From Lepidodermella squamata (taxonomy: Eukaryota > Animalia > Gastrotricha): 64,000 nucleotides of DNA. A program made the position numbers and the translations under genes. The stretch covers positions 496,001 to 560,000 of the forward strand of contig JBLDXI010000012.1 in NCBI GenBank assembly GCA_047495785.1, in the 5' to 3' direction. The stretch's first letter is position 1. Each line of letters opens with the position of its first letter. The notes below the pieces were generated by a model. That model made no database searches. It worked only from the letters and a program-made list of their open reading frames with translations, and was not told the origin of the DNA. Of the stretch, positions 13,322-43,002 are shown one piece after another.

Positions 13322-16283
13322 TTATAAACGAAATAAAGTAGCTGCAATGCCAACGAAATGTATCAGTTGAGATGGCGTGAAACTGTTGTTGCCTATTGCA
13401 CAAACGTCGTTGCTTTCATTTTTGTCTTTCGTCGCAGGGTTTGGCACGATCGCGGCACCACCGCCGTTGAATAGGAAGTAGGCCGCTTTTCGTTCTATCA
13501 GCTCGAATTCTTTTCTCCGATCGGAGAATTGATGCCGTAAGATGGCTATCGCAAGAGCTGTTGCCAAAAAGTCGTCCGTCGGCTGAAAGTTTACGGGGGG
13601 TTTGACTTTTGTGATTATGTCTAAGCAATATCGCCGCAATTCATTAACACCGAGATGACCGCTATTCGCCCCGAAAAATAGCCCGAATTTAGGAGACAAT
13701 TTCCACGACCCTGTCAGCCTCTGCATTGCAGCTAAACTTTCCATAGAACCTTTATGGCTGCCAGAAATCTATACGTAGAACAACAGTGCAAATTGATTGC
13801 ATTGAAGCGTTTCCCCCAACTTACGATCAAGTCATCCTCAGCTAAATTTGCAGTGCATTTGCAAGCTAAAACAGCCTGGGTTATCGCCCGCTTCATTCGG
13901 TCTGCTGGGTTGGTTCCGGTCGTAGTAGATCGCTCTCGCCCGAAATGATAGGCCACGCCGTCATCATCGACGTAATAACTAACCTAAATTGTACCGACAT
14001 TGAAACAAAAATGGATTCAAATTGAAAAACACCAACCTTCGATTCTGGAATTGCGAAAATTGCGGTGTGGTGCTTAATTGGATGGCCAGATTCAGCGTCA
14101 ACTGCAATGAAAGCCGTGAAATCACAAACGATGCCGGTCGAGGTCGAAATCGCCATCGCCTCCTTACGAAGCGTTTCTATTAACAATCCCGAACACATCG
14201 CTTCATTGCTTAGCTCATTAAGCCTCGCCTTAGCCGCAAGCCGGTGAACAGGCATGGCATCATCTGAAGTCGAAAGAGCAGTTGGTGGGCATACGAAGTT
14301 AGTTTGAAACGTAAACGGCTCTCCGGTGATATCGGCTTTTACATTGGAGCAACCATCGACCGTTGAACCGCTTTGATTTTCTATCAAAACGTATTGAATA
14401 ATCGGATAGCCTTGGAAAGCCCGCTTTGATAAACTGTTCGGCATCAGCCTCGCAACCCGATGACTTTTGAACGTCCAATCAAACTCAATGCTGTCAGCAA
14501 CCGGCGTCAGAGCAGTTTTGAGCAGCATGACCACACGTTCAGCAACTTTAGCCCCGGTGATTGCCGGGTGATTGGCCGGGTGATTTGTCGAGATGCCACC
14601 ACACCTAGCCAGGCCGTCGATTAACGTCGGGCTGACAGCGTCGCCCACACCAATGGTGAAAATTCGAGAGGAACTAGCATTTTTTGCTGCTAATGCTAGA
14701 ATTTCACTCGCATTCCCGACATCGCCGTTGAGAAGAAGAAAAATTTGATGATGGGACGAGCTTACAGGGCCAGCTGTTGTAGTTGTTGAGGTTGATTTGT
14801 TATTTTTTGCTGCCGGCGGCGTTTTACACTGCGAATAGATGTATTTAAGAGCTGGCAATAACTCAGCTCCAGAGCCTAAATCGGCCTTCAATTGAGACGC
14901 ATACTTCAATGCAGCAGATATGTTGCGTTCAGTATACCGAACCGGTCTGAAAAAGATCAATTCCATAAGTAAAACAGCTCAAATTAAAATGTGTTACTTG
15001 TTAGGGAAAAGCGTTGAAAACGTTGAGCCAAATCCAACTAAATTGAATTTGCACCCGAGCGGAAGACTTTTGACAAACAAAACCATCGCTGATTTTATCT
15101 GTTCCAACTTGGCGCTATCGATGGCCTCTGATTGCTCGAAAACGAACCAGAATTTATCATGATTAGGCTTGCCGATGAAGCTATTATTGCTGGCTATAGC
15201 TGCCTCGTCTAACAGAAATTTACCGGTTGATTGCGTCGCGTGCAATTTATTTTTGAAATTATCGCCACCTTCGCTGCTTTTGCGTCCGTTCAAATTGCTA
15301 ATAACTTCCGGCGCTTGCCGCTGCGGCTCGAACCAAGCGCCAGCTGCGTGAAATGACAACCATTTCGAGCAACCGGCAGATTTCGGCGGGATTCCCGGTT
15401 CAAAGAATATCATCGGTTTCCGAGTTTCAGCAGGTGTTATCAATAGTTCCAAATCGTGATCAGCCGCGTATGGCCCAGCCAAGGTGACTACGGCGATTTT
15501 GTTGCTTTCCGTGAATTGAACGCTTAGCTCATCGGTTGAATTCGCGGCAGCAATGCTAGCGATGCGGCTAGCGATTCCTAGACTGATTTTGGCTTCGAAA
15601 CCAATCGAGTAAGCCGAACCGGTCACGGAAATGTACGGGCAGTGGGGCGAATAGTTGAGGCGCTCTCGCAAGTCACCCTTTGCGTTAGGATCCTCGCCAC
15701 GGAATAGACTGACTTCAAAGTTTGGCACGTAGCGTGGATTGAAAACAGGAGGGATGATGAGCGAGAATACGCCGCTATCGAGATCACGTCCGATCGGTTG
15801 GACTATCCCAACTGTGATGATAGCTGATGCTTTTGGTTTGAGGTAGCCGAGCCATAACCGAACGGCTTCGGATGGCGGGTTGTTTTGATTTTCTAGCAGC
15901 ACCCCGTTGTAGCTCTGGTCGAAAGCATGTGAGTAAACCTCGATCGCTGTTTCACGGGACCGGCATTCGCCACGAATTTTCCGGCCATTCATCTCAGCCT
16001 CGAGCCGATAGACAGCAGCTATGCCCTTGGCCTCATCAATCGGAACAACAAATTGGCACTCAACAGCATCGGCCAGGTTATTTTCGTAGGTCAGGCACGC
16101 GATAATTGCGATTGCACTGCCCCGAACCTCGGCGAAAACCGCGACGTCCTTTAATGGAACGGGGAAAATCACACGATCAGGTTCAACGGAGCCGTTTTCA
16201 CTCTTGTTGCCGGTCGTCGGTTTAGTGTCTTTTGCTGCCGAAGAGCGCACCAAGCAGCCGACCAAGCCACAGTAGCTTGCCAT
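13322..16283 (-). CDS. VWA5A-like protein (VIT + vWA domains); spliced
   Basis: VIT segments (VPLKDVAV, YENN..AVECQFVVP, AVYRLEAEMNGRKIRG). vWA segments (FVKSLPLGCKFNLVGFGS, RIFTIGVGDAVSPTLIDGLAR). VHRLAAKARL, and C-terminal LATALAIA..EFELIERKA. Confidence 0.85.
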
Positions 16284-18915: not shown

Positions 18916-19975
18916 ATGCTTTTCCGTCGAGTGAGCGACGCGTCGCTTTCCCTTCTCGTAGTTAGCCACTACTACATTGTATCATTCTTACCATCCTTAG
19001 CTGGCTCAGCCAGCCTTCATATCGGCAACAGCAATCGCAACAGGCAACAGCGCCAACGACAAAATCAACCTGCCAATAACCGTAGAAACCCTGTCACTCA
19101 TTTTCCTCAGTTTTGGATGCCATCTACTACTGTTACTACTCAAGCTACAACCACAATTACACCATCAATTATAACTGTCACTCGGGCTTCAACGTCATTC
19201 CCAGTCAACGCCATGTTGGTGGCGGCTGTCAGAAAGTTAGGAATGACGCCAGATCAATTGAATGACAAAACAGCTGAGAAACTGCTGCTTCGTGTGATCA
19301 CAAATCAGGTGATAGAAAGCGTCCACAGCCGAGGTGGTTGCCCAGATACTTGGGAAAAGTCTATGTGTGACAATCAGCCTTCAACTTTTTACCTATGGCT
19401 CCGAGAGCTGCGCGAACAAGAAGTTCGCAATCAGGTAGCGAAAGGTAAGTACTCGTAAAAAGTTACTCAAATTTCACGGGTCAATTTCTTTTGTTTAATT
19501 AGCTGCTAAAGATTTATTCGAATCAATAATGCAAGAACGAGAAAAGCAAAGCGAAGGATCTATGACTAAGACTTTGGTTGAGATGATAAAAAGCCGGCAA
19601 AATGTCAGAATTCCTCAAATACCCCGCCCCAATATCACTGCAGTCCTAGTCGATCAACAGTCTACTTCAACTTCAACTCAGCAACCATCTATCAGCCATG
19701 CAGTGAAGCTGAAAAGCTCGAAAAATATGCAGGATCCGTCTGTTGCCTTCAGCAGCAAAACAGTCATTCCTCTCGCGAGTGATGCACCGTCACTGTCCGT
19801 GGCTTCATCGGCGTCGAATTCACCCAGGCATAGCGGGGCGGAGACGGTGGCAAAGGCGCTGAAAACGGGAATTTCACTGGTCTCGACATCTTCGCATCAA
19901 CACTTTCACTCTGATTGGGCTTTGACGTTAGCCTCCGGGCTCTTAACTATTTTTCTACCGCTTTTCTGTTTATGA
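18916..19975 (+). CDS. Secreted CX8C-helix family member 1 (333 aa; exons 18916-19444, 19503-19975), with Ser/Thr-rich regions and a hydrophobic, GPI-signal-like C-terminus
   Basis: Hydrophobic N-terminus; core CPDTWEKSMCDNQPSTFYLWLRELREQE; phase-1 gtaagt...ttag intron keeps frame; ends WALTLASGLLTIFLPLFCL*. Confidence 0.8.
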
Positions 19976-22399
19976 TAATGAATAAGGGAGTTTGAGACTA
20001 GGCAGAGTTTTTGCAGATTTTATGACAACGGAAGTAAACAAAGTTACACTTATAGTCTATCGACAGTTTTTGATTTTTTTTTAAGGGGACAGAGGGTCCT
20101 ATTTGCAAACACGCTAACGGAAATCGGGCGGAGATTCAGGGACAAATTAATAACTTTTATTGCGTGCATATATTGACCGATAAATGTCGAAGGTGATTAT
20201 TCAGGCGTGACATAATGGTTGACCTTTAACAATTGAAATTTAAGTGAAGACTACAACATGGATAAGAACCCATTCATCCCAACATCCTTGCGACGAGGCG
20301 TCTGTAAAAGTTTCCTTTTTTGAGTGGGCATTATATTGGCTGAATAAAGTATAACACGGGCGTCCACTGATTCACTCGCATACACTTGCACAAATGTCTG
20401 GTTCCCCGGAAGCTGGGGCGAATCGCCAAAACGACCATGGCGCTACACTTTTTCGTTGCTCCGCTCGCACGCAGAACAACACAAAGCAGGATTCGACCAC
20501 GCGATCCCCTGTGCTAAACTGTCCCCAGACTAGTTTCACTTTTAAATGAACATTCTTTTCATAGAAGCATATCCACGAGTTACTGCCTTGAATTGATCGA
20601 GCCGAATACTACCCTAAACCCTAATTATATAAATAGCATTCCCCGAAAATCTCCCGACTCATTTAAAACTCATTTAACCTCATTTAAAATAGCTTCTAGT
20701 GCTAGCCTATGGCAATAAAATAGGATGGAATAATTGATTCGCCACCAAAATGATTGCTAGCTTAGCTATGGATGCGCATCCCATTATCAAGAACGAGGCT
20801 GGCCGAAATTTGCCCCAGTTTGGAAACAGGAACGCGTTGGTTTGACCGTAGCTTTAGGGCAACTTGAAGGATTGAACTTGAATAATAAGAATCGGCGTAC
20901 GGCTGCTTGCTCTATATATAGTCAACCACTTTTATTGCACTCATCAAATAAAAGCCTTATTGAAAAACGCAAATTCCTTTGGAACATAGCTTTTATTGGA
21001 CACGGGGCCTCTCCTTGGTACACGCTCTTGGGTTGCGCGACGTAATCTTTATTCATCCTTTCTTTGCGTTAATTGCACCATAGCATCTGGAAACGTGTAA
21101 TTTCTTTCTCGGTTGCATATAGTAGGTAGAAGTCACTGGTGTCACCTCTTAGCCCAAGACTGTGATGAGATCAATGACCTATATTCTCATTAGCTCGAGA
21201 TAAGAGTTATATAAATCATTGGCCAAATCTCAAAATTTGTTGACATTTTTGATTGATCAAAATTATACCATTCCTCGATCTCCCAAGAGCCTAAACATTT
21301 CTCCATTCAATCTCTGTGTATATTATTTTCGAGAGTTACGGTATTATACTTTTTGAATGGCAATAATTTCGATTGCGATTGCGTGGTAAGAGACAGTGCG
21401 TAGGATTCAGATAGTCAAACCGGGCCGGAAGTTCGCATAAGAAAAGCTGCAGTAAAATGTTATGACATTAATCGTTTACTACCACTACAAAACTACTATA
21501 TTACATACGTTGAATAAAGCTAAATTTAATATTCCGTGGGGAGATGCAGGAAGCTTTTAGCGGGGTCGACATAACGATGCACGACATTTCCGCGAAATTT
21601 GAACAATTGAACCGCTTTCGATCACTCCAAGTTGAAAGCAAGGATCTTCTGCGAAGAGTTGTTACGCATGGTCAACCAGCCTGTCACATGAGGGTGTGAC
21701 ATTAAATGAGTCTAGCAGCCTCTAATTGCGGTATTATCCTTCAGACCTGAGTTTTTTTCCAGGGTTAACATGACGCAAAACTGCCGCCCGTTAAACCGTT
21801 AATTATTACAATGAAAATTGATCGACGGCTTATATGACAAGATAACCGAAGTCAAGGCTAAATTTAGGTTAGTTGCCGGGTAGCTCTTCTCTCGTTGTGA
21901 TTTCTTTTTTCAATCTCAGCTTTCTTATCCTGATTTCACAGCCTCACATTTTTAATTTTAGATCATAGCCCTTTTTCGAAATCACTGATCTTTGTTTATT
22001 TTTCGGCCAGGACCTCTGATGAATCAGGCGTCCATAGTTTCACTATTTTTCGCAGGCCCTTAGAGCTTAGAGCTATCCTTATGATTCCTCCGCCCCTTTC
22101 TTCTAAAATTAGTTTAACAAAATTTACGCACGTCCTACTTTTTCCTCTATGGAAATGCCTTGGAAAAGGTGGGGAAACTCGCTCCAAATAAAATTATAAA
22201 CAAAATTACCAGCGTAGTCCAGACGCCAGAAATCACGTATGCGTGAGCGATTCTGCTAGATATGTACCATATACGTTTCAAAAATCCTATTTAAGTGCGC
22301 ATACCGGATGCCATATCGGAAATTGTGTAAAAATTTCCACTTCTTCACTCCCAATACATATTTTGAATTTTTACGTATAGTCAATTTTATTCGGCTAAA

Positions 22400-23154
22400 A
22401 TGCAGCATGTGGAACCTTTAATTCTGTTGTCGGCGTTTCTGATGGTCGAAGGGCATAACAAACACACCAATGTCAGGGCTAGGAAAGCGCCATCCCTGTC
22501 GACTACGACCATGGAAATGACTAAGCTCGCGGCGGAATCCGAGTCAGTTAATGGGGATAAAATCGACAACGACTCGATCATAATTTTACCTGGTCAACCA
22601 CCTGTTAACAACAAATCGGCTAAAAACAATAAGCAGGTCAATATGAGCAAGGAAGATCGGAATGCCCTACTTCTATTAGATAAAGCGGCCTTGGGGAAAT
22701 TGTCCCTGAGCGGAGACAAACTGCGGCAAATTCTCGAAGGTGAGCAGTGGATAAATTTCTCGCGTAGTATTATAATCATTTCGTTATTATTACAGCTACA
22801 GATGAGTCGTTCGATCGAAAGCAATTTATTCAAAAAGTCGCGAGTTTTATCCGCGAGCATCTCGCCCACAGTAAATGTCCCAAGTCTGTGCCGTTGGATT
22901 TCTGCATCCGGGAGCCAACGGTGTTCTTTCTCGGACTGAAGCAAATAAAGGCTAATCAACAATCGGTTGAACTTCACGATCAAATTTACACTCTGCTGAA
23001 AGCAATTTTATCCGAAAAGAACAAGCGACCTCCTTCAAGTCAGGCCAATAGGGACAGGAAATCATCCCATAGAAGGGCTCGTAGAACGACATCCATACCG
23101 GTAATATCAAGCACGCCATCAACCATTAGTAATAATAAATCCGATCATCCGTGA
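22400..23154 (+). CDS. Secreted CX8C-helix family member 2 (232 aa; exons 22400-22739, 22796-23154), divergent, with a basic tail
   Basis: Signal-like MQHVEPLILLSAFLMVEG. Splicing gtgagc...tacag yields SKCPKSVPLDFCIREPTVFFLGLKQIK. Tail RKSSHRRARR. Confidence 0.75.
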
Positions 23155-25378
23155 ACAGATGAAAAAAAATTGTGTCACTAAGTTTATACGTGTTGTCGAT
23201 ATTAAAAGAAATGGATATCGTTCGCATTTTACATGATATTGTTTTAGCGGAAATGATCATTAAAAAAAGCTTTTTATCCCAGATGATTTCCTTTTAGCCG
23301 GAAGTACAGAGCTATTCTAAAAGCGATGGACTCTATCTATACACGCCCATTCAGAAACAGGGAATTTTGCTTTCATGCAGCGGAAGAATAATCATTTCTG
23401 GTAATTTTGTAAATTTTGCTCAACATCCAAATGTATGTAGAGCAAAAAGACGCCTGAATGCTGATTGTATTACGAACTTCTGAAGCTAATCAGGCATGAA
23501 GCTGAAGGCAATTAAACAGTTTTTTTTAGACTGGGAGACTTCCCTTCGTTTTCACCCAGGGCATATAGCAGGGACGAAATAGGCATAAAAGTACTGCCCA
23601 AATGACGCCATATCCTGTCTAAGAATGAAGAAGAATCTGCTAGTGTGGAAATGACTGTTATTGCCGCAGTCGCAAATCAGGCTCTGGCAAAAAATTTATT
23701 AGTTAATTACGGCGGGAATTCGAGTTACGACACTATGCGCTCCCATGGGTTCGGCAATCATCACACGTCGACAAAATAATTTATTAATTGCATCCTCGCG
23801 TGAAACCTGTTTACCCCGTTTCAAGTTCCGACACTTTTAGGGGTAATTTTCGCGCCCAAGTATCGATTAGGTTCGTGTTCTACGCATTTTTAATCCATCC
23901 GATCACTTGTGAAAAGGTCCATTCATATTAACCACGCTTTTATTAATCTCATTTGACTCGATTCCTTGTCATTATGTCCTAATAATTCGCATGACCTTTT
24001 TCAAATGTTATTCGGTCCCAATTTGAGACCGTCTGCAAAAAAGCGATAAAATGTTATTTAGGATTTGTCTTCTGTAGATTAGGAAGTATAATGTTTGGGT
24101 AAATTTTGAGCCCGGATTAGGCTGTAGCTTCGAATTGGAGTCGATTAGCATACTTTCTAGGTTAAGGTTAGGGTTAGGTTTAGGTGTGGGCCGCCAGGAA
24201 ATGGACTGCCAACTTCCAATAGCTTAAGGAGGCTGCACACAAAGGTTTTTTGATTGTGAATCACTGCCCTATTGTTCGAGTTTTTATTGCTTTTCTAGCG
24301 GACGGTCTCAATTACTTTGAAGTACAGCTAGAATTTTCATTAAATTTTAAATGTCCCAGGGCTATTGGTCAATTTTTGAAACTGCCAACTATACTTTGGA
24401 CCAACTTGGGGGCCATGATTCGTATACAATTCAAAGTGCGCAGCAATAGTCATCAAGTGTCCTTCACTCTTCACGCTTTCATTGATGAATAACATCGCGA
24501 AACATTAGCTCTTTATCGCCTACGTCATATTCTCGCATATAAGAAAAACATCGATTCGATTGCGTTGAGAGAGAGCGCGAAATGCCTATGGTGCGCACTG
24601 ATTCGGGTTTTTAACCTTTATACGACTCGTCCCTTGGCGTAGAAGCACAGGCCTCTTGAGGCGTGCCGTATAGCTGAGGCTGATTTGGAAACTCAATGAC
24701 CAACATTTTTATGTTACAGCCAATTTCCGCCAATAGCTGTTGTTAGTCTCCAACTTTTGGTTCAGAACGCGCTGATTTATTTTAGAATCAATTTACGTTC
24801 GCCTCGCACCTCGTGGATCGGAACAGTGCCGTAGGTATCGCTCGAATTAGAGGTCTCGGTCCGCATTAGGCATCTTAGACCACCTACTCAAAACTTGTAC
24901 CCGAAATGCTATAAAACAATAATTTACCTATAGCGTCAGCCCTTTGTCGCGTCCGATCCAGAATTTCTCTTTTGTAAGGCGCAGGACAATTATAGTTTTG
25001 AACTAAGTCTTGTAAACCAAGAAGTATATAGAGACAAGATCAAGAATGTCTCACGTAGGAAAGGCGCGAGCTAATTACGGGAGAGCATCTAAATTTTTTC
25101 TTAACGAGACGCGCATGATACCGCAGTACGTGTCACCCTGGGGAAGATGTACATAGTCAGGGGTCTATCAGCCCTCATGTGACCGAGGAATGTAGTGTTT
25201 TTCAGTGTTTTTCTAATTTAAATATTATCTACCCGCCTCGCAAGTGTCTATAATTTCAAAATGTCGGCTTATATTTCGAATTCCATCAATTTAATTTCAC
25301 TTAAAGTTACCTACTCGCTTTTCTGTGAAGCTCAGAGCCAAAAATTATAAGAATTTGTTTCATATGATTTTCTTAGAT

Positions 25379-25986
25379 ATGCTACCGGATAATTTGACAA
25401 TTTTAGCTGCGGCTTTCCTTCTAGCTGCCGTTGACTACCAATGTATTGCAGCTGAGGAAATTTCCGCGGATGAAATAGCCGACAGCAAGGCCTTTGCGAA
25501 GCAGTTACTCCTGGCTCGACCATCAGCAGCACCGCCGGCTTCCATCAACTCTCAAGCGCTAACTCAGCTGATGACTGCACTTGCAAATAGGCTGATTGCT
25601 GAGCAAACGGCCGCGGCTAAAAATTCCGACTACTGCCCGGAGACATTCACGCCGCAAATGTGTAGCCAACTACGGCAGAAGGGTTCATTTTACATCTGGC
25701 TGCATCAGCTTCGAGATCAGACCATTCGACAAGAAGGTAAAATTTCGGCTTTAATTATTGCGCTAATTTGAAGTGAAAATTCCATTATTTTCTAGCCTCC
25801 GAGAGTGCGAAGAAAATCATAGTCCAATTGATAAAAATGAACAATGCGACGCGGAACGTACCAACTGCATCGGCAACGAAGCCACCAGTCAGCCTTAATT
25901 CGTCGAATCTGGCCGCGTTTCTTAAAGCACCGCCTACTAAGGAGAAAAAACAACAACAGCGTTCACGTCGGCGTCTTAACAAGTAG
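25379..25986 (+). CDS. Secreted CX8C-helix family member 3 (182 aa; exons 25379-25736, 25796-25986), with a basic tail
   Basis: Signal-like MLPDNLTILAAAFLLAAVDYQCIA; core CPETFTPQMCSQLRQKGSFYIWLHQLRDQ; ends QRSRRRLNK*. Confidence 0.8.
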
Positions 25987-26456
25987 CGATATATCTATTG
26001 AGTGAATAGTTTGGATTGTCATCGTTGAAATTAGAATACCTACTTGGAGTTGTTCTGAAAGATAGAGGGGCGGGTTTTATATCGAGGCAAGCCTTGTTTG
26101 TAATGATTTTATATCGTTTTTTGCGCTTCATATGACCAGTAAAATTTTCACGTGCGCTTTATATTCTTCTCTGTGAAAATTGAAATCAATAATTTATAAG
26201 GAACATTCTAGAAGTTTATGCCCATGGGCGTTAATATTCGCTTTCAAGATGGCAAAAGGTCGGTGCTGGAAATTCCCAAAATTAGTTTTTTAATTGAAGA
26301 ATTGCTAATCCATTTTTTACGGTGGATTTTTTATTTTTGAGTTTTGAGTTTTGTTATAAGTCGGATTTATTTTCAACAATTTTTTATCCACGTATTTTTG
26401 TAATTTTTTTGTACAATAAAGATCGAAATATAAGTAGGGTAAACCCCCCATTTTAC

Positions 26457-27782
26457 TCAGATCAAGGAAGCAAGTCGTGTATAGTTCCAAGCATGAGGAC
26501 ATAGATCAATTCGTTTCAGCCGAGCCAAATGTGATTCGAACGCGCCTCGTTTTGATGAGTAATTTTCCGACTCGAAGGAGAATTCCAGCTGATTCACGTT
26601 CGCAGTTCTGTTGCCGAAATCACCACAGTATTTCGGCCGAAGATCTTCATTATCAGACGTGCTGTAGCAGACACCTTTCCTCAGAACATCCCGCAATGGG
26701 TTGCCATTTTTCTGATAAGTGTAATGAATTGCCACGTGGGGCCGCGTGTTGTTGAACGCTCGCCCATCCTTCAGCCCATCGACCTCATGCCAATCGCCTA
26801 TCTGACCTGCGGCGTTATTCGGGGCGCCGTTGTTTTCGATGACCCAAAAATAATCGTCGCGAAATTTATGCCACAGAATCGTGCACATGACGCTGAACTC
26901 GGAGAATGCGGACTTTTTTACAGATTCTGCGAATGCCTGGTCGAAATTCGACTGATTCATATGAGCCGTTATAATCTGACGCATAGCTTTCAGATGCTCC
27001 ATCTTCACGATAACAGGGAAATAGGTCATGCAATATCCAATCTCTAAAATACCGTAAATACCCCATGGAATTCAGTTATATTAACAATTAATACCTTTCA
27101 TTCCGGTAATTTCGAAAGTTCTAGTCGGAACCTCGTACCAATATCCACCTGACTCTTTCGCTCGGCCGTAAACTGGCCGAACTATTGGTTTGCCCTCAAG
27201 AAACAAGTCCCCAGGCGTGACTCGAGTTATGAAAAGCGTGTCAGTGTCGACGAATCCTACGAATTCTGCCGTTGTGAAATTATCAGACCAGAATTTCAGC
27301 CACTGAGCTTTGTACCAGCCAGCATTTCCGCTGATTTCGAACGGCTGTACAGGGATGGATCTTATCTCCGGAGTTATTCCAGCTATGTTGTATGCAAAGT
27401 TTGCGATCTTTGCGACGAAGTCCAGGTGCCCGCCTGATGCCATCTCGTCGGTTATCATTATCAAATCGACAGTATCTTGAGGCCAAAATAGCGCGAAAGA
27501 TGGGAGGAACCAATTTTGCAATTCATCAACGCTATTGTTTGAAGGACTAACTGGCATGAGCAATACAAGTGAAGGCCATGGCTGACTGCATCTATCAGTA
27601 GAGGTACTCAAAGTAAAGTTACGAAGTCTTCGACCAAGATTTCTCAGAAAGCCGTCAACTTGTTTGAAGTCGGCAATCGTTCCTGGTAAGAAGTACTCCA
27701 CTTGGGTTACGTTGAATATTAAAAAACAAATGAGCATTATTAGAGCCAAGCATTTCGTGGTCCAGCCGAAGTTTGGTGCCAT
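26457..27782 (-). CDS. Type II membrane glycosyltransferase-like protein (DxD), paralog 1 (424 aa; intron 27044-27094)
   Basis: N-terminal TM anchor; WFLPSFALFWP, GWYKAQWLKFWSDNFT, FVGFVDTDTLF, CMTYFPVIVK, INQLEF-like C-terminal block. Confidence 0.75.
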
Positions 27783-28220
27783 GTCGTCTGATTTTTCGAG
27801 TTATATATAAATCTAGCCCTGATGCATAGCTCGACGTCAGCTTGACAATAGGATCTTTCTCATGCCTATGACTTGAGCCATACGCACCGATAAAAACTGG
27901 TGTAAAGTCATCAGTTTTCAGGAAAAATATTGATCGCTCGAAACGTGTCGCTAATATAGCTGAGTGCTGAATTACAAATGAGCAAAAATTTCGATTTTCG
28001 GGCCCGCGCGAGTTTAGAATTGGTGTCAATTTGCAATTTGCACCTATCTCAATTTGGAATTTCATCGATTTCAAAATGTTGTTGTGAAATTTGAGATTAT
28101 GGCGTAAACTATTACGTTAGTAACGCAGATCCTGCTGAAAAAGTATTAAATCCACTTTACCATCATTAATGGTTATTATTATAGTCTTTATTAACGTTTC
28201 TAAGCCAAACACGATGCAAT

Positions 28221-29620
28221 TTAGGTTGGTAGAGGATCTGAAATACTTTTGAGTAAGTCTGTGTTCCAACTGTGAGGACAAAGATCCAACCTCGCCAGCC
28301 GCTTCAAATGGGAATCTTGAGCTCTTGCATCATCCGAAAAATCGTCTCTCTCAAATGCGAATTCGAGCTGATTAATTTGGTCGCGTCGAAAATTCTGGCA
28401 GTATAGTGGTAATGGATCATCAACGCCTGGGATCATGCCGTAGCAAATCCCCTTCCGAAAGACATCTTGTATTGCATTGCCCCGCTTTTGATATGAATAG
28501 TGCATTGCTATTCGAGGCTGGGTTCGATTGAAAATTTCCCCGTCAGCCATTCCATCAATTTGCCGCCAATCGCTAACTTGCCCCATAGAATTGGGTGGCT
28601 CTTTGTTGTTTTCAACGATCCAGTAATATTCATCGCGGAAAAGGTTCCACATCAAAGTGCAAAACACGCTGTATTCCGACAATCGATCAGCCCAAATAAT
28701 CGAGGCGATCGACTGGTCGAAAGTAAGGCCGGTCCTGTTTGTGATCCACTCGCGCATTATCGGGAAATGAGCTCTTTTTATCACGACTGGAAAGTATGAC
28801 ATGCAATAAAATGGCTCTAAAAACGAAAAATCTGTCATTAAAATCTGAAAATATTCGACAGCCAACCTTCGAAACCCGTCAGCTTGAAAGTGAATTGAGG
28901 AACATCGTGCCAGTATCCTATTGCCTCTTTAGCTTGCCCATATACAGGTCTAACTATGGGTTTATCGCCGAAGAAAATGTCTTGCAAAGTTATCCGCGAT
29001 ATAAAAACGGTGTCAGTGTCAACAAATCCAACGTAATCCGAGTTAGTAAAATTTTCCGCCCAAAATTTCAACCACTGAGCCTTGTACCAGCCAGGTTTCT
29101 TGCGGACGTCTAACCGCATGTTCGGAATCAACCTCACGCTAGTCCTTTCCCGGATTGAAGATGACAAATTGAATGTTGATTCAAGATCGTCAAGGTCGAA
29201 TGCGTAATCAAACGTTGGGTGACGCAGTTCGGGGTCCCTTTCGTCGGTTAAAATCAGGAGATTGGGTCGGTGAACATCCGGCCAAAATAGCGCGTAAGAT
29301 GGCAAAAACCAGTCTTTGAACTCGAAAAAGCTTTCATTTTGCCAGCTCATCGGCAATAGTAGTGACAACTCGGGCCAACGCTCGTTGCATTTTGCTCTGT
29401 TTATTAGTTTTGAAGGGGGATATGGAAATCTGATTCGAATGTAAGCCAGAACGAGGGAAAAGGAGAGTATTAAGGCTAAAATTGCCAGGAGGCTTTTGCG
29501 AGTGCAGCTCGACTGATCTTCAAGATTTTTCCGCCACCGTTTAGAGTCGAAAAATCCGTGAACAATATGCAAGGCCGGTAAGACGTAATCTCCAGATTCC
29601 GATGGTTGATCGGGATGCAT
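28221..29620 (-). CDS. Type II membrane glycosyltransferase-like protein (DxD), paralog 2 (449 aa; intron 28817-28866)
   Basis: TM anchor; WFLPSYALFWP, GWYKAQWLKFWAENFT, YVGFVDTDTVF, CMSYFPVVIK. The intron is at the equivalent position and phase to paralog 1. Confidence 0.75.
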
Positions 29621-31529
29621 ATGGCCCAGTGGTCAAAGATCATCAGCCACAAACTCTCACGCTATGTATCCATGAAATAAATTCCATGTATCTTTCCTAT
29701 TTGGTATCCATTCATCGCCTTTAATTCAGCTTTTAATTCAGATTTGTAAACAACAAACAACGTTTTCTTTCAATACTTTTCCTCATGTATATTCATAATT
29801 TTCGCAAATTTGAATAATGATACATGTGAGTCGGCGGTTTTTGGCACCGTGCCGTTATGAATGGCAAATAAATGAATGATTGTGGCTTGTGGGCGTTCAT
29901 CTCAAATATTATGTAAAACCAGAACTCGCCGATAAAAAAAGCTATTAGCGAAATAACTTTTATTAGAATTGTTTATCTTTCGGTACCCACGCCTCTATTA
30001 AACTTGTCACAAATTGGAAACACAAGAAACATGAGCCACTTGCAAGCTATGTAATCCAATTACTATAATATCGTCGATTTTTTTCAGCCCACATTCTCAA
30101 GGGCGAGAGTTTAAGTGCCCGTCATCTCGAAGGCATGGAAACCTGAAAATTGATTAAACTGATTAAATAATAAATTGGCAGTTGTTCATAATCGATTACG
30201 GTCACTATGGCTCGCTCGGCGGCAACAACCCGAGTGGCTAAAATATTGGCATTAATTGAATACGTGGGCAAATTGTCGTAAAAAGTGATTCACCTAATTT
30301 ATTTCAATATCAATTCCCCTGATAAAAGTCTAAATTTAGGAGGATAAAATTTTTTAGTTTCTCACTTATGCGCTCTCGTCCAACTCTCTGTTGTAAAATC
30401 GTGGGCGCAGATTTTCAAAAAAACAACGCGGGTTGAGAGATGATTGAACAATAATATATCGCGAATTTGCGAAATGACAGCTGATTGCGCCGGTGGTATA
30501 TACTAAATGTTTCATCAATAGTGGGTGGCTATAGGAATAGCCGGTGCGTATTTGATATTTATCAAAAAGGACAATGCCTACCATTCGCGCCGAATAACAG
30601 TAGCTTTTAAGTCAATTTATATCGCACATCAAAAAATTGCGTCCAAGCCATTTCACCGCAGGGCAAAAGGGATTATTCGTTTTGCTGACCAGCTAATCTA
30701 TTAGATTACAAGTTCAAGTTTCATCCAATACGCTAAATGCTAAATCAATCGCTACCCAATTTAGAATCGGCTGATTTCAGCCATTTTTTCTTGTGGGGGT
30801 AATCAGAGATAATAAATTGCGATTTTATGATTTCAGGCATGATGCCAACTTGCTAAAATGTAATGTTTGATATGTTAATCAGTGCGCTTTTTAGTTTTGA
30901 TTCACCCTGTAGTGGGTGGGAGTTTCGCTATGACCTTCTATCCAGAATTTAACTCTCTTAATTAACAATTGTTTGCGATCCGTTGGCGCAATTCCCACTG
31001 CCTCGCTTTCCGGCTTGGCCGAAGAGTAAGCCGCAATCGGCTATCGCCTGCAAAACCTATCACCGCGCCGAGTCAATATTTGCCAATTGCGAAGCGCGAT
31101 TTTTATTACATTATGACATGATAAAAGAACAAAATAAACAAAAACCCACGTAAGCATCAAGAGTGCTATAAAGCGCACTAAAGTTTCAGCTCTACGCATC
31201 AGCCCAATTCCTGTTCACCTTCAGATTTTTGGCCCAAAGATCGGTCAGTTACTTGCGAAAATTGCAATCGTCCCTATGACAATCACGCGCTCATCTCAAT
31301 CGCATTTGCCCGTCAATATCGCGATTTTGCTTTATGAAACTATAAACATTTAAATGCTCCTGAATTATGCATCACCCCTTGATTTCCCAATAGAGATGCG
31401 CGACTCATCCATGCTATCGATTCGACCAGCCAAATAATATTATAATTCATTTAATTCAAAGCGACCTGTTTATAATTTTGTTATCAGTTTTTTTCGTGAT
31501 AGTTCTCTATTGATTAACTAAGCAAAATT

Positions 31530-32051
31530 ATGATGCAGCAAGATTCTTTCATTTTCCACCTTGCCGTTTTCGGAGCACTAGCCTTTGTCTGCGTTTCTGG
31601 AGCTCGAACAGTTCTGCCTGATAACGCAGCTTACGAAGACGAGGACTATTTGGACGTTCTAGTTCCCGAGGAAGATGACCCGCGACTTTCGAATTTGATC
31701 ATAGCCAAGCGATCGGGACAGCAGCCTCAGCAAGCTCAAGTGTTGGAGGAGTCGATGAATATCCTGCGCAACATGCCGCCGAATGTTCTTGAGGCCGTGC
31801 TGCAGGCGGCGATGAAGAACAACGCAGAAAGTACCGGAGATGATGGTTGCCCGAAGTCGTGGCCGCGATCTCTCTGCAAACAGCCGAGCAGCTTCTACGT
31901 CTGGCTGCAGGAGCTGAGACGTAAAGAAAAGGAACGCGAAGTGGCGCAAGATGTCAAGAAAGTTCTGGCGCAAATCGTCATGCGATCGGCTCTCCTCAAG
32001 CAACAGCAAAAGCAGGCAGCGGCTGCGGCGGCGGCGGCGGCGCGTCTGTAA
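31530..32051 (+). CDS. Secreted CX8C-helix family member 4 (173 aa, intronless CDS), prepropeptide-like
   Basis: Signal peptide, acidic pro-region, KR site, core CPKSWPRSLCKQPSSFYVWLQELRRKEKERE, Gln/Ala-rich tail. Confidence 0.85.
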   Translation: MMQQDSFIFHLAVFGALAFVCVSGARTVLPDNAAYEDEDYLDVLVPEEDDPRLSNLIIAKRSGQQPQQAQVLEESMNILRNMPPNVLEAVLQAAMKNNAESTGDDGCPKSWPRSLCKQPSSFYVWLQELRRKEKEREVAQDVKKVLAQIVMRSALLKQQQKQAAAAAAAAARL

Positions 32052-33458
32052 AAGTCGTTGATAGTTCTCCCTTTATATTGAGCTGATTTAAAGTTATGTT
32101 CGCATACAAATATTTTCTCATCTCTAGTCAATATTTCACCTTTTACACAGTCAGCTAGAATCCTGTTTTCTAAAGAAACTTGGAGCTGAATCTTTTGCAA
32201 TTCTTAACTTATTTTTCTTATCGAAAGTTCGAAATCCTCAAATAATGTTCACTACGTACCTAATTCTTGAGCTCTATAGCAAATATTTCGCTGTGAAATA
32301 AAACGATCATTTTTAACCAATAAATGTTGTTTATACGACGGGTCGATTGGTTACAATTCAGGGGCGTAACCAGGAAAAGTTGTTGGTTGTTGTTATATTA
32401 GATCTAAGAGTGAAATTTTCATTTTCCCCAGGAGAATCCAAGATCGACGATTGCCGATTTTCAATAAGAAATATCGACGATATTGGGATTTCGAGATCGG
32501 CGAGAAAATTTTCGGACATTTTGCAAACATTTCCTCCACGTTATTAGCAATATGAGCCATTTTCTTAAGAAAAAAGGCCGGCTATTTCGAGCTTTCATTG
32601 TTGTTTGAACAACCAACACAGCCAGCCGACTGCTCCAAGTTGCAAGAGTAATTTTTACTTGAAAACACTGAAATTAGGAACTCAGGAGTTCTTCTCGGCT
32701 CCAGCAACCTCATCAGCGGAGAATATTGATATGCTACAAGCTACCTATTCATAAGCTTGGAGAATGTTGAAAGAGGATACCTGATGATATAAGGTGCCTG
32801 GCGAAGGAATTTTTGGCAAACATGTTAAATGGGACTTAAATGGGCAAATATACAGTTGCACTGGAAGTAGGGCGTGGTTCGATTTCTGCGATTCACTCAT
32901 TATCATTGATGGCATCCGGGATGTCCGGTATTGTCCGGAAGAAATAAGGTGAATGTGATGGAAGCATGGAATTTATGCATGTGGTTACAATCAAGTCATT
33001 ATGGTGACGGAAGTCCTACTCTTTCCGCTAAATCATGCCAATATAAAGTTTGACTTCAGTTGTGAAATACATACATAAAATTCGATGGGTCAAAAAAAAT
33101 GAACCCACTTGAAATTATTTCTTCTTCTTGTCCCCTGACAATCCTCCTAGATTAAGTGTTTTCTAGTTTAAGCGCGTGCAATACTAGAGCATCGCTGCGT
33201 CTGGCGGGTGTAAATTAATTTCACACGATTGCGCCAGCTCATCGGACAACGTCTCGCAACCCCCTCCCTCTTAAAACTCTATCCATTTTTGAGACTTTTT
33301 GATCCAATTTATGCGATATTATGTTTGGATTTTCTATGATTGGGATACAAGATAAAACCTGGATTAGATATGTCTGAGCCCTTCATCTATCAGCCTTCAG
33401 CTAAAAATAATCTTCATTTTATTAGAGCTACATTTACTAACTCATAAGTGATCTCAGC

Positions 33459-33841
33459 ATGGCGGTTAAGCTATGGATTTTCGCCTGCTTATTCGCCGTT
33501 GCTACGCTCTTTGCCCATGTGGCTGTCGCTGATAGCTCATCCGATGAAGCTTTGAATTCGCTCGACTCCACGGAAGTCATGAAAAGAAGCGAAAATAAAG
33601 ACTGCCCCAAGTCATGGTAAAAACATCAGCCTTTCCAGGCCTTTAATTATCTATTATTTTTCGCATTTTTAGGCCCAAATCTCTCTGCAACCAGCCAAGC
33701 AGTTTCTACCTCTGGCTTTCCGACTTCAGACGAAAGGAGAAGGAAAAGGAACGGACTGAGGACTTGAAACAAATGTTGGCACGAGCTATCATCAGCACTG
33801 CCTTGATGAAGCAACAAGCTTTAAAACAACAGCAAGATTAA
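33459..33841 (+). CDS. Secreted CX8C-helix family member 5 (108 aa; exons 33459-33616, 33673-33841); absent from the ORF track
   Basis: Spliced translation: MAVKLWIFACLFAVATLFAHVAVA-DSSSDEALNSLDSTEVM-KR-SENKDCPKSWPKSLCNQPSSFYLWLSDFRRKEKEKERTEDLKQMLARAIISTALMKQQALKQQQD*. Confidence 0.88.
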
Positions 33842-33962
33842 TCCAGTTCGGTTCCCGGCGGGTTCTGTTATACTTATATAGGTCAAACGCTTTTACAAAT
33901 AAATTAGCGAATATTTCGTGTCAATTTCACGGAGTGCATAATTTACAATTCAAAGCCAATTC

Positions 33963-37215: not shown

Positions 37216-37406
37216 AACTGCCCGACTAAACCGAATTTCTGACTTATTCCAGAGTACTTTTCATCTTTTTGTCATAAATTGTAACTCGACATGGCTTGCT
37301 TGGAAATAATTCAAATAAAAAAGTGCACGTAATTCGTGATTTATTAATTGAAAAAAGCCGATTAAAATGCGAATCGACAATAGCAATAGGAATGTTTGTA
37401 GAAGTT

Positions 37407-37989
37407 CTACAGGTAATAGGGCGGTTTGTTGACTTTGACGCCCCGTTCGGAGAGCGCTGCTTCGAGATGCTCCATAGTCAGCGTCAGCTTGTTTGCCTGG
37501 GCTGCAGCACCAGCCTTCGCCGCACCGGCCCCAGTCGCTCCACCGGGAGCTTTCGCCGCCTGAGAAACACGGCAATGAGCAAGAGCGTCGTTCGCAATAT
37601 CAGCAACAAATTTTTGAGCGGCCAAAGAAACCAGGCGAGTTCTGCAAAATCAGAAAAATTAGACAAATTCTACCTTAAGAACATTTAATTTCACATTTTG
37701 GGATCGTTGCACTCGAATCCAGCTTGTTGCAAATAGAAATTTGAAACAGAATCGGGAATCTAAAATAATATAATCTTAAGATAAAAAATGAGGCATCTCA
37801 AGTATATCTTACAGTGGACTTGTAATCTTCGACTCGAGCGACAAATTCGCTCATAGACGTTGTTTGAGGTGGCTGCTGAAATCTGGCCTGCATCCCAGGC
37901 TGAGGCGTGCCCGTTGAAGACGAATCCATCATTTCACCTGGGTGGCCCATTGAAGGACTAGGGTGGGCAATAGAGCGCGGTTCGGCCAT
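37407..37989 (-). CDS. TAF10: TFIID subunit 10; three exons
   Basis: EDYKST|IPDSVSNFYLQQAGFECNDP, RLVSLAAQKFVADIANDAL, LTLTMEHL..AL.E.GV.V.KPPYY. Confidence 0.95.
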
Positions 37990-40090
37990 TTCAAATGAAT
38001 ACTCAACTTAAACACCTACTTTAGACATAAAAACCACTTTTTTCAACTCCGCGAATGAAGTCAAGAACGCGCTATTGTTCCACGGTTGAATGAAGTGAAC
38101 ATGCACCCGATATTCTTTAGTATTTTTTAATCACATCGAGAATTTTGAATCATTGTTGGTTTGTTATTTCGAGCTTTCTTGTTAGCTTTCTTTCTCAAGT
38201 TCAAGTGGCTAAGTACACAAGTTTTTCTCGATTTTAAACCACTTCAGACTAGAATTATACGTGTTGTCATAAAAGTTATTAAGTAAGATGGCATATTTAT
38301 TTTTTGGTAAGATATTTAGCGCGTGACAATTGCATCTTTTTCCGCGATATTTTTTCGCACCAAACACGGCTGCTAACCACAGCGAGCGATGGCGCACTTA
38401 CGCTACTCAACACGGGTGCATTTTCAAAGCGGAACCGGTAAAAAGCGGCCATCAGGTGTTTTGAACTGAAATATATAGTGCCTCGGCCGGAATCGCAGGT
38501 ACACGCCGAAGACATAAACCTATGTATATACCACACTGGTACCGGCCTTAATTTCACGTCGGTATTATTTCAACTTTGCACACACACTTTTTGTCGTCAC
38601 GCTAAAAATAAATATTCAAGCGGCGCGCGCTATTCGCCACCTACAGCCAAAATAATGCGGTAATAGTCGCAAAACGGGCTGCAGCTCAACAGATTCAGAG
38701 AGAGAGAGGCAGTAAAATGAGATACGAAATATCGCATTGCATAAAAAGCTTGTTGGCCGGCGTAAATTTTTACCAGGCGGCAACGGCGGCGGCGATATAC
38801 ACAAGCGAGCGCGAAAAAGAAACCATAGGTGTGTACATAATATTATTATGAGTAAAAACACAACATAACACAAAACCGCGCCGTCAACAACAAACATTCA
38901 AAAACCGTAATACTATCAGCAATACCTGTGGTACCACTTTGTGCCTTTTTACTATTACTAACACCATCATCATCATCATCAAAAAAGTCTGCGACTTTTC
39001 GTGGCGCCAAAATTTATATACGGCTTTTTGACTACTTATACACAGCCGCTCTATTTAGTTATAAATAATATCATCAGCTCTTGAAATAAATGCTTCATTC
39101 AAGGCATATCAATAATATGCGAATCTCAAACTAAGCGTAACGGACAATTCACCGCCGCCGTATCGTCAGATCCAGCAGCCGATTACTAAACACGATCGAG
39201 TACCACGCATGAGCAGAATTTAACGACTTTTTTGCGGCAAAAATTCGCAGGTAAATAGCGCCGTTCATTTTACATTGCAATTTCGGTATAATTACTAACA
39301 AGCAAGGCACGAATTTCATAAAGCCTGCGGACACGCCTATAGTAATATTTTTGGAATATTACCATTGAATTTACTATATTATTTTAAATACCCAAGTTTT
39401 GTGGATAATGATGACTTTTCTGCACGCGATTTCGTTCTAAAGAAGAAACCCAATATTTTCAAACAACGCAGCACGACTCAGGACGAGCAGGAAAATGAGC
39501 AGCAAGTAATACACTTAGCTACATCCCCAGCTTAGTAATCATCCATTTTATCCATCTCACTCAGCTTTAATATACTAAATTAAAACTAAACTAACACATG
39601 TCTTAGCGTAGACGTGAGTGCAATTTTTTACTAAAAATCATCAGCCAATATCCGTGTTTTATTTAAAGTTAATAGTGAGGATCTGGCTTAATTAAACAGT
39701 AGCCAATTTCGTTAGTTATTCCGATGAAATCCCATAGAATTCAATATCAACCACGCTTTTTCATCATATTTCGCTATGATTTATTTTTTAATGAACTGCC
39801 GAATATTATTTAGTAAAAAAAAACACGAAAATCGCGATTGGTTTTTTTACCCCAAGAGATTATGATTTTTCACAGCTGAATAGTAAAACTTTGCATTGGT
39901 GCACTGATAGTTTAAATGAAATCCCGATCAAATAGAATAGAACCTTTCTATTACCCGACTAACTTCAATTTACACATAGAATTAGCATTATTCGGGTTCT
40001 GGTCAATTGTTGTTACATTTTTCTTTTTCGCTATATACAAGCATCTATTGGCGAAGTGTTATTAAAATCCGACAACCAGCTCGGCGAAAA

Positions 40091-42376
40091 ATGATCGCGA
40101 CCCCGGCCGCCACGTCGCCGCCGCCGCCTGTCAACCTTGAACACGTCACGCTCAAGAAGTAAGCTTCACTTTTGTAAAAATCTATTAAGGCGGATCTATT
40201 CACGACAATGCACGACTGACCAGTAATTTAGCGAGTCAGCGCGAATTCTACCAAAATCTCGAGATTTGACCGCGAGTGATGCGCCGTAAATCTTGACACT
40301 TTCAAGCCGCGCAACGTGTCCTCGCTATTAGAACCGCGAAAGCGCGCGATGAGGAGGTGCGAAGTAATGCATACACATGTTGATGTGTTCTAATTCTCGA
40401 CGTCGATGATGATAAAGCGCTCTCGGGACAAACAGCGCTCTAGATTTAACTACGCCGAGACTGCAAGTGTTGTTTGGCGCAAACATTTAAACTAGCACGC
40501 AGCTTGTCCAGCAATTACCGACGCTTTCAGATGGTGGTGGCGCGCCGACTTTTACTGCCTAGTGACCTTTCAAAATAAACAGCTCACTTTAATTTTCACA
40601 CATTTTAATGCACCTCTCCTCTTCCCTGCCTGAACGCGCCAAAGTATCTGCTGATAAAAACAGATTTTAGCCCGCTTTTCGTCACTTAGTCAAGATAAAA
40701 ACTGCTGCTTATCTATTGTTACCACCGGCTCTAAAAATGTCGCTGTCGCCGTCGCCTGACCAGCTGTGCAGCAATTACCACAGCATTCGTGGGATATTTC
40801 TCGGCCTCAACGGCAGCAAAAACGTAGGGGCGGAGTGGCTTTATCGCGATAATACCGTCCATTTCGCATCAAACCGGCTCAAAAAAGATTACATCAACAT
40901 TTGCGAGTATGCATTACTTCTATACGAGTATAAGTATACCTACTCAATAAAACCCCAAGTGCTATTATTTTTCAAATCCTAGTGCTGATTACAAATTCCA
41001 ATTACCTTACTATATCATAGAGAAAATTCTTTGTTTTTTCTTTATCGCTTGATTTTTCTATCCGTTATTTTAACTGGTTTTTTTTCCTGAAATCAGAGTT
41101 CCGCTATTAACAGCTGAAACTTCGATTGACGATCCAAACGACTCAATCCGCACGAGGCTATCTTGCGAACCTGCTGAACAGCAATTTGCCGCTTACGACA
41201 TGTCCGCAGACACTACTTCCCTGCCGAAGGTTCACCTTTACATCAAAGGCAGCCATAATTTGAGATCAGTCGATGGCTCCCTCTTCTGCCACGTCATCCA
41301 CCTCTACCTGCGAGCGAAAAAGACCGGTAAATGCCTTTCAGGTGGTCAATTCATAATTTACGAGTTTTTTTACGATTTCAAGACAGTAACTTCGACCTCG
41401 ACATATGCCTGGTAAACACTAATAAAATTCCCGACGAAATTAAGAAGGACTACACCGGTCGCCTGCCCGCCATCCGGCTGTGTGATAACACGTGGGTGGA
41501 TGATGTCGACGAGATTACCAAGGTCATCGAAGATCGGTACCCCGAGCCACCTATGGTTACGGATCGCACGGATGATTTGATCGAGGTAGATATCAATTCA
41601 ATCGAATTTTTCGGGTTTTTTAGATAAATTTTTTCAGATGTCGTCTGATGTTATGAGGAAATTCGTTCATTTTCTTCAATTCGACGATCGCACTCATTTA
41701 GTTGAGGAGCTGCGGAAACTCGAGCAATTCCTAGGTGCTAGAAGCGTTAGTTTACATCAAACAAAAGACTTTTGAGTTACCTATCATTTTTTTCAAGAAT
41801 CGGACACGATTCCTCAGTCACGATCGAGTGATGGTCGAGGTAACTTACTTTTTTACTTTGAAAACTGAGACTTACCTGGGAAATCTGCTAGGATTGTTTT
41901 ATGCTACCCAAATTGCTTCAAGTGATGATTGCTGGCAAGGTCTTGAAGAACTTCGAACTGCCAGAAGATTTTGTTCAGTTGAAGCAGTACCTAACAAACG
42001 CTATTGACGCCGCCCAGTTCGTCGCAACTCGTCCTTCGCAAGCAGTGAGTGCTCGAAAAATATTTATCATTAACAGCGAATCTAATGTATTAACTGAAAA
42101 AATTAGGAAATTGTCTTGCGCTGGTGTACAAAAACGAAGTCGGACGTGAATACGCTGATGAAAGAGAACGAGTCATTCCGATCACTGGCGAAGACTGTTA
42201 CAATGATCGGAACTCTCGCGCTCCGGCAAAAGAAACACAGACCCGGCATCAATGCCGAGGACACGGCCCCTGCCCGCGAAGTGCACACATTTTCAGGCGC
42301 TAACATGCACACCACAATATCGTACAGCTTCACAGACTATGGCGGCCGGGTCAGAACGCGGAATGCTAACCAATAA
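40091..42376 (+). CDS. Divergent chloride intracellular channel (CLIC/GST-fold)-like protein; multi-exon, first exon uncertain (common exon starts at 41097)
   Basis: VHLYIKG...DGSLFCHVIHLYL, LPAI, IEDRYPEPP, TRFLSHDRV..DCFMLPKLLQVMIAGK..KNFELPEDF..L.QYL.NA....F..TRP...EI. Confidence 0.7.
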
Positions 42377-43002
42377 ACTGAAAGTCCTTAATTATTACTG
42401 AATGATGTTATTCTTCGGATAAAGTCAGCCGGTATAATATTTCAGCTTGAATTTTTTAAACATTATACCTGCATTATTGCTTCGAAGTGATTCGCATTAC
42501 GCCCTAGTTTGATCTTTGATCTTTTATTCGATTTTTTTCCGAAACACGCTTACTACACAGAGCACTTATTATAGCAAAACATGCCACTAAAAATCAGATA
42601 ATTATTTTGTTGATGTGTTTTTGGCGAAAATTTGATCTCTCGTGCGCTGATGAGGATCGCTTGGTGAAAATAGAGATAGTTTATTTGGAAAAATTTAATC
42701 ACGCCTTACATCATTATACTTACTACTACCTATATAAACGCATCCTTGTAAAATATGCAAAGCCGCCATTAAACGATGAGGTATCGACAATAAAACTGCA
42801 AAGTCTCTTCGAAAAAGTGTCACAGACGATTCGTTTATTTGCAAGAAAAGAAGTCCCTCGCATTCGGCTGTACATGAGAGAAATACGCTCCGCAGATAGA
42901 AGAACATTATTGGTATTAATAAAAAGAACTCAACAATTATAATACAGTGACTTATAGACATGAGTGAGCGTAGTTACTTATAATGGCGGCATATTCGAAG
43001 GA

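Follow-up and report, generated by a model that had tools for sequence, protein, structure and literature searches.

Five genes at 18916-33841 and the transcription of g4 and g5

The window analysed here was a 64,000-nucleotide (nt) stretch of DNA from the gastrotrich Lepidodermella squamata (contig JBLDXI010000012.1), which belongs to an assembly of 121 Mb. Five plus-strand genes for putatively secreted proteins, g1 to g5, were confirmed at 18916-33841 of this window. An earlier note on this DNA had proposed that the five genes share one cysteine-containing core, and all five cores were present. In the intron-removed translations, C-P-x7-C was found in five of five genes, with exactly 8 residues between the cysteines and proline first. 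F-Y-(I/L/V)-W-L followed the Cys loop in four genes, and g2 was divergent with F-F-L-G-L. The introns of the window were short (GT..AG, about 56 nt). The gene models are collected in Table 1. In g1, the Cys loop had its C at codon 142, and a GT donor was located at 19445. The layout of g4 was a signal peptide, an acidic propiece up to a Lys-Arg (KR) site at codons 60-61, and a domain of 112 amino acids (aa) with a poly-Ala end. All five genes opened with Met and a hydrophobic stretch. Signal-peptide-like starts had been claimed for each of them; the starts were strong in g3, g4 and g5 and acceptable in g2, and the claim was weakest for g1.

Transcription was monitored using one public sequencing run, which matched the exon-like parts of the window alone (0.21 of its words). 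The organism and strain label of the run differs, and its identity to the window was 95-99%. RNA contigs were compared with 27960-33959, which spans g4 and g5. Contigs covered both genes (Table 1), and the depth was zero over the intergenic 29160-31559. In g5, two RNA contigs skipped 56 nt with a GT..AG joint. After a one-base shift this joint was the predicted intron 33617-33672, which falls inside the Cys loop. One contig ended in a run of A behind 33924. Because of the RNA contigs, the GT..AG joint and the A-run end, g4 is called transcribed, and g5 transcribed, spliced and polyadenylated. The single difference between g4 and the run was synonymous. In g5, five of seven coding differences were synonymous, and both replacements were located in the propiece, before KR.

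Two side observations were made at g4. A contig from a DNA run tracked g4 to 31900 and then continued with a different coding-like sequence, which could stem from a paralog or from an allele that has diverged. Where g4 ends, its poly-Ala codons (32011-32049) were treated as a repeat, and reads seemed to be cut there.

Table 1. Gene models of the window, neighbouring genes and related arrays (positions refer to the window unless a contig is named; GPI, glycosylphosphatidylinositol; ORF, open reading frame; UTR, untranslated region)
Feature	Position	Strand	Content	Evidence or remark
g1	18916-19444 + 19503-19975	+	333 aa	
g1 exon 1	18916..19444	+	start weakly signal-peptide-like, Q/N/T-rich stretch, upstream helices, Cys loop, first part of long helix	ORF, profile match
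g1 exon 2	19503..19975	+	remaining helix, S/T-rich tail, hydrophobic C-terminus (GPI-signal-like)	phase-1 splice yields the core string of the earlier note
g2	22400-22739 + 22796-23154	+	232 aa	
g2 exon 1	22400..22739	+	signal-peptide-like start, spacer	GTGAGC donor at 22740
g2 exon 2	22796..23154	+	upstream helix, Cys loop, helix, basic S/T-rich tail	profile match E 6e-17
g3	25364 (or Met at 25379)-25735 + 25795-25986	+	187 aa	
g3 exon 1	25364..25735	+	signal peptide, spacer, helices, Cys loop, first helix part	orthologue-like P0005, P0006, P0009 (metagenomes)
g3 exon 2	25795..25986	+	remaining helix, basic tail	
g4	31530..32051	+	single exon, 173 aa	ORF; RNA contig 31614-32277
g5	33459-33616 + 33673-33841	+	108 aa	RNA contigs 33438-33924
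g5 exon 1	33459..33616	+	signal peptide, short acidic propiece, KR, first half of Cys loop	RNA contigs
g5 exon 2	33673..33841	+	second half of Cys loop, long helix; 3' UTR to poly(A) site 33924	RNA contigs
Pro-less arrays	C3:913-951 kb, C33:720-805 kb, C25:2.22-2.23 Mb, C15:447-467 kb			L045-L048
TAF10	~37413-37920	-	in 37400-44400	one gene between it and Med26; same order as L040:500-5800
Med26	~42979-43742	-	in 37400-44400	same order as L040:500-5800
Two tandem paralogous two-exon genes	26457-27782, 28221-29620	-		between g3 and g4
Ordinary neighbours	13893-16283, 4921-7269, 9262-10107, 55087-55719	-, -, +, +	VIT + VWA protein, MFS transporter exons, tyrosine-kinase domain exon	

Family size and predicted fold

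A search with g4 alone was performed against the six-frame translation of the genome. It matched g5 at E 6e-13 and g1 at E 4e-7, and loci on the contigs C19 and C42 at E 6e-9 to 5e-4. At the level of sequence, the similarity among the genes is far beyond chance. A profile made of ten cores (A1) gave 25 matches at E < 1e-5 and 92 matches at E up to 1. The clear matches were the five window genes, three or four genes on C19, about eight on C42, about nine in a tandem array on C17 (984-996 kb), and single genes on C13 and C2. Weaker matches sat in tandem arrays on C3, C33, C25, C15, C26, C7 and C24, and the family members were spread over at least ten contigs. What had been presented as a family of five genes is instead a superfamily of roughly 25 to 90 genes: some 25 paralogs are clear, and the candidate matches number up to 92.

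The arrays of weaker matches code for proteins of about 100-230 aa that share this layout but have no Pro after the first Cys. The core of this sister subfamily was C-x8-9-C, then S-F-Y-I-W-A. Profile-profile comparison (hhalign) joined both subfamilies at 95% and E 2.9e-8 across the loop and the first part of the helix. Family-wide, the loop spacing was 8 residues in most members and 9 in few. In most of the copies read, the exon with the loop started, 65-140 residues before it, with Met and a hydrophobic segment resembling a signal peptide. The proteins of the arrays on C3, C33, C25 and C15 were secreted, highly basic and about 100 aa long; some were 79-85% identical to their neighbours, with a ratio of nonsynonymous to synonymous substitution rates (dN/dS) of about 0.3.

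The introns were compared as well. A phase-1 intron lay at a common site in g1, g3 and apparently many paralogs of the first, Pro-containing subfamily, in a charged stretch of the helix about 17 residues past FYxW. In g2 the intron was upstream of the domain, in g5 inside the loop as described above, and g4 had none. The positions differ among g1-g5, and the gene structure was therefore reshuffled within the cluster.

The fold was modelled for the part of g4 past KR (112 aa) using a 30-row alignment (profile A2). AlphaFold2 gave a mean predicted local distance difference test score (pLDDT) of 86.4 and a predicted template modelling score (pTM) of 0.63. The predicted elements were helices at 5-19, 23-40 and 63-110 and a Cys loop at 46-55. 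With the single sequence of g4, pLDDT was 47, which was too poor to use. The conserved unit was confidently predicted to be a helical domain of about 70-110 residues, not the short disulfide-loop peptide that had been proposed from the letters of the window. About 30 residues upstream of the loop, corresponding to one or two helices, belonged to the conserved profile, although the earlier note had described the flanks as largely unalignable. In A2, the invariant columns were the two Cys, Pro and Phe, and Trp was nearly invariant. Such residues would be expected in the core of a structure and not in a peptide that activates a receptor.

Comparison with known structures was performed using Foldseek, which gave no match in the PDB at E 0.001 or better. 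VIA-align in its wide mode gave Z of at most 5.5, to coiled coils and over the single long helix only. The best structure match in the ESM Atlas had a template modelling (TM) score of 0.60, to a bacterial cluster, and a feature search of the same atlas with a neighbouring open reading frame gave generic coiled-coil matches only. The matches to single coiled-coil helices at Z of about 5.5 are the kind of result expected if the proteins were structural or matrix parts of secretions (for example an egg coat, an adhesive, mucus or a layer resembling cuticle), in which the long helix would form coiled coils. The mucin-like tail of g1 and the many family copies would also suit such a role. We consider it very improbable, since repeats and cross-linking motifs were absent, the proteins have just two Cys, which are placed to pair within the chain, and are very small, and a highly charged stretch breaks the heptad pattern. 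A prediction of a two-copy complex scored 0.00 with no answer returned, which speaks neither for nor against self-association.

Relatives, selection and possible function

Relatives outside the genome were found by searching 1.84 billion representative proteins exhaustively with HMMER, which gave 22 matches. P0003 (leucine-rich-repeat-like) and P0010 (internal repeat) were dropped as spurious partial matches. The remaining 20 relatives were 83-197 aa long and had a signal peptide and the same domain. All nine that were looked up derive from ENA metagenome assemblies. Their contigs are considered animal because TEAD/YBD, formin, TAF10 and Med26 genes are present, and their G+C was lower, at 35-40%. 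One contig (L040/L041) kept the gene order of the window: Med26, TAF10, then two g4/g5-like and two g3-like genes.

A tree of the cores placed our own and the metagenomic members together in five subclades; it was built on few columns and had many open forks. The subclades were g4 with P0004 and P0007; g2 with P0015; g3 with P0005, P0006 and P0009; the C17 array with P0012, P0020, P0021 and P0022; and the C42 group with P0008. Since the subclades are mixed, the subfamilies are older than the split of these species, and local duplications came later. The five genes of the window fall in different subclades, and the cluster is therefore old. The description of the family as old and diversified was thus borne out by subclades and gene order common to related species.

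Other searches gave negative results. A word-indexed protein search with g4 had no match, and such searches with profiles A2 and A3 returned metagenomic proteins already known, or one new one. A scan of metagenomes of the Joint Genome Institute (JGI) with profile A4 gave no relative. Nematode cuticle-collagen N domains and arthropod R&R chitin-binding domains were looked for and not found, which is weak evidence because the controls gave no signal either; a bdelloid spliced-leader string had no match, an unreliable result. In Pfam-A, no match reached the gathering score in any member; the best was Gam, whose 18-19 bits fell short of the cut-off of 25 and covered the charged helix only, and no Pfam-A family was common to more than one of the 30 members scanned. 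A profile search of PDB sequences gave a best E of 0.1, and the motif strings were absent from all papers searched. These results suggested that neither the family nor its domain has been described in Pfam, the PDB, the papers searched or the 1.84 billion representatives, with metagenomic proteins as the only relatives. The earlier view that the family fits no known group still stood after the Pfam, PDB, fold, literature and representative-protein searches.

Selection was estimated from dN/dS. The values were 0.27-0.38 among tandem paralogs of the second subfamily and 0.17 for a C17 member compared with its metagenomic orthologue. The pair of g4 and its orthologue was kept out of this set because, at about 37% identity, synonymous sites were saturated. 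The ratios indicated a somewhat relaxed purifying selection and, overall, gave no sign of positive selection. This bears on the possibility that the genes are chance open reading frames, pseudogenes or a repeat element. Nothing was found in favour of such an artefact, apart from g1-g3 lying outside the RNA-covered region. It is refuted for g4 by its RNA and for g5 by RNA that is spliced and polyadenylated. Purifying selection, orthologues in conserved gene order, and open frames with signal peptides in most copies also speak against it, and we regard it as barely credible for the cluster.

The precursor layout differed within the cluster. An acidic propiece with KR was found in g4, g5 and their metagenomic orthologues, and was absent from g1-g3. 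The claim of an acidic spacer followed by KR was thus supported for the first two genes and failed for the other three. g4 and P0004/P0024 share a motif of an acidic run, D-P-R-L-S, a hydrophobic run and K-R, and KR was also present in P0007 and g5. Cleavage at KR would leave 112 residues in g4, 64 in g5 and about 74-99 in the orthologues. In other members the signal peptide runs straight into the helices, with no dibasic site. A Gly-basic amidation signal was found in none of the members, and no G-K/R followed the helix in g1-g5.

This layout raised the possibility of protein-hormone or neuropeptide-like precursors. The g4 and g5 products would be cut at KR into receptor hormones of 60-110 residues. 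As in calcitonin-type class B ligands, the receptor would be activated by the ring together with the first part of the helix, and the remaining helix would dock. The signal peptide, acidic propiece and conserved KR of g4, g5, P0004 and P0007 are consistent with this. One-to-one relatives in kept gene order suggest stable, distinct roles. The language-model neighbours of g4 were mostly small secreted proteins and neuropeptide precursors, with weak scores of 0.76-0.82, and the g4 RNA contig had a high depth, which is a poor measure. However, g1-g3 and most paralogs are without KR and propiece, the amidation signal is missing, and the conserved unit extends by about 30 residues beyond the ring on its upstream side. 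Near-identical tandem arrays with dozens of paralogs would be unusual for hormones, as would a mucin-like, GPI-like member, and no known peptide family fits the ring size and consensus. We therefore hold this explanation to be improbable.

The charge of the domain suggested a different role. The core (loop and helix) was cationic in 8 of 9 full-length members, with charges of +3 to +8 and an isoelectric point (pI) of 9.1-10.1, and the core of g1 had a charge of -2. The subfamily-2 proteins were rich in K/R. Cationic amphipathic helices of this kind might act as host-defence or membrane-active effectors that hit the membranes of microbes or prey, with the anionic propiece blocking them until KR is cut and the aromatic FYxW patch sitting at the membrane interface. 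The precursor layout of g4 and g5 equals that of amphibian-type antimicrobial precursors, and large tandem arrays, recent duplicates of 79-85% identity and a narrow lineage restriction are typical of immune effector families. We consider a defence role unlikely all the same. The dN/dS values of 0.17-0.38 gave no sign of an arms race, and subclades and gene order were kept between species. Besides basic residues, the helices contain many acidic ones, and the net charge of g1 is negative. In addition, typical helical antimicrobial peptides are shorter than these products, and a tethered mucin-like member fits poorly.

The tails varied from gene to gene. g1 had a long S/T-rich tail with a hydrophobic C-terminus, those of g2 and g3 were basic, g4 ended in poly-Ala, and g5 had almost none. 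From its C-terminus, g1 may be GPI-anchored.

Taken together, the genes belong to a real superfamily of small secretory-pathway proteins that is partly expressed and under selective constraint. With moderate confidence, we read it as a new secreted family that acts as an extracellular binding or effector module. The five genes are an old, diversified cluster in this large lineage-restricted superfamily built on one helical domain. The elements of the domain would be a short helix or two, a loop of ten residues that the invariant Cys close, and an aromatic F-Y-x-W patch that starts an amphipathic helix of about 45 residues, usually cationic. The N-terminal signal peptide would route the proteins into the secretory pathway. 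In the g4/g5 clade, the acidic propiece is probably cut off at the conserved KR, which would leave a folded product of 64-112 residues. The invariant residues would build the core, and variable surfaces would set the targets. The tails would set the site of action: absent or short in g4 and g5, which would be diffusible, basic in g2 and g3, and in g1 a mucin-like stalk with a GPI-type end, which would tether it.

Several points weigh against the binding or effector module. No experiment or homologue links the domain to any activity. The RNA evidence concerns g4 and g5 only, and the RNA nature of the run was judged from its coverage of exons only, from the splice joint and from the poly(A) end. 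Hydrophobicity alone served to grade the signal peptides, and the start of g1 was weak. The pairing of the two Cys, their distance and the way the helices pack are inferred, and the long helix might just as well form a coiled coil or act on membranes. Sequence alone does not discriminate between ligand, pheromone, toxin and defence effector as the role of the products.

A bolder form of the binding-module reading, which we think doubtful, is that the domain defines ligand proteins of a new class, be they hormones, cytokine-like factors or pheromones (waterborne or by contact), which diversified into dozens of paralogs within a little-studied lineage of invertebrates. If this were true, a matching new receptor family would exist, and one signal would come in a juxtacrine version, the tethered g1, and a diffusible one, the free g4 and g5.

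Neighbouring genes, significance and comparison with known systems

Two tandem paralogous genes on the minus strand lie between g3 and g4 (Table 1). Their products are type II membrane-anchored proteins of about 420-470 aa, which match DUF6492 only weakly and below the threshold (E 0.02-0.03). RNA contigs of low depth were found in their region at 28473-28566 and about 29040. The other neighbours in the window were ordinary.

The domain is without a detectable known relative, and yet dozens of expressed or conserved secreted-protein genes carry it in one small animal. Expanded secreted families usually mark lineage-specific biology such as signalling, mating, defence or secreted materials. The members are short, easily synthesised candidates for the bench, in particular the predicted 64-residue product of g5, and the profile can annotate eukaryotic metagenome contigs that are otherwise anonymous. 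The general kind is familiar, that of small disulfide-stabilised secreted pre(pro)proteins, and secreted families without relatives are frequent in phyla that are under-sampled. As long as it has no function, the family is a well-defined lead rather than a discovery.

The earlier note had set calcitonin, CRF/DH44 and MCH/elevenin aside, and the exclusion was confirmed, as ring, length, amidation and sequence all differ. Like calcitonin, CGRP, amylin and DH31, the family would carry, in its secreted precursors, a disulfide-closed ring with an amphipathic helix directly behind it. In calcitonin and DH31, the ring is C-x4-5-C and comes directly after the processing site. In contrast, the ring described here has 8 residues between the Cys (8-9 family-wide) compared to 4-5, and it is preceded by conserved helices. 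Unlike calcitonin/DH31 and CRF/DH44, the family has no amidation signal, and its products would be 64-112 residues long compared to about 30-50 in the calcitonin group; the mature length typical of calcitonin/DH31 and CRF/DH44 peptides is about 30-45. MCH and elevenin share the secreted precursor and, in some, the C-x8-C spacing. However, their ring consensus, compared without alignment, is another one; they are short C-terminal peptides without a 45-residue helix, and there was no sequence match.

The precursors of amphibian antimicrobial peptides (dermaseptin, brevinin with its 'Rana box') resemble g4 and g5 (P0004, P0007) in the signal peptide, acidic propiece, KR, cationic helix and small ring. 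This likeness concerns architecture only, not homology, and g1-g3 do not have the layout. In contrast to the amphibian peptides, the ring stands before the helix and not at its end, and the products would be 3-5 times longer, with many acidic residues. The Ly6/uPAR family is beta-rich with 4-5 disulfides and not homologous, whereas the domain described here is predicted to be all-helical with one disulfide. The analogy to Ly6/uPAR is one of family behaviour only: both are small disulfide-stabilised extracellular modules that occur in tandem arrays, with apparently tethered members, such as g1, beside free ones.

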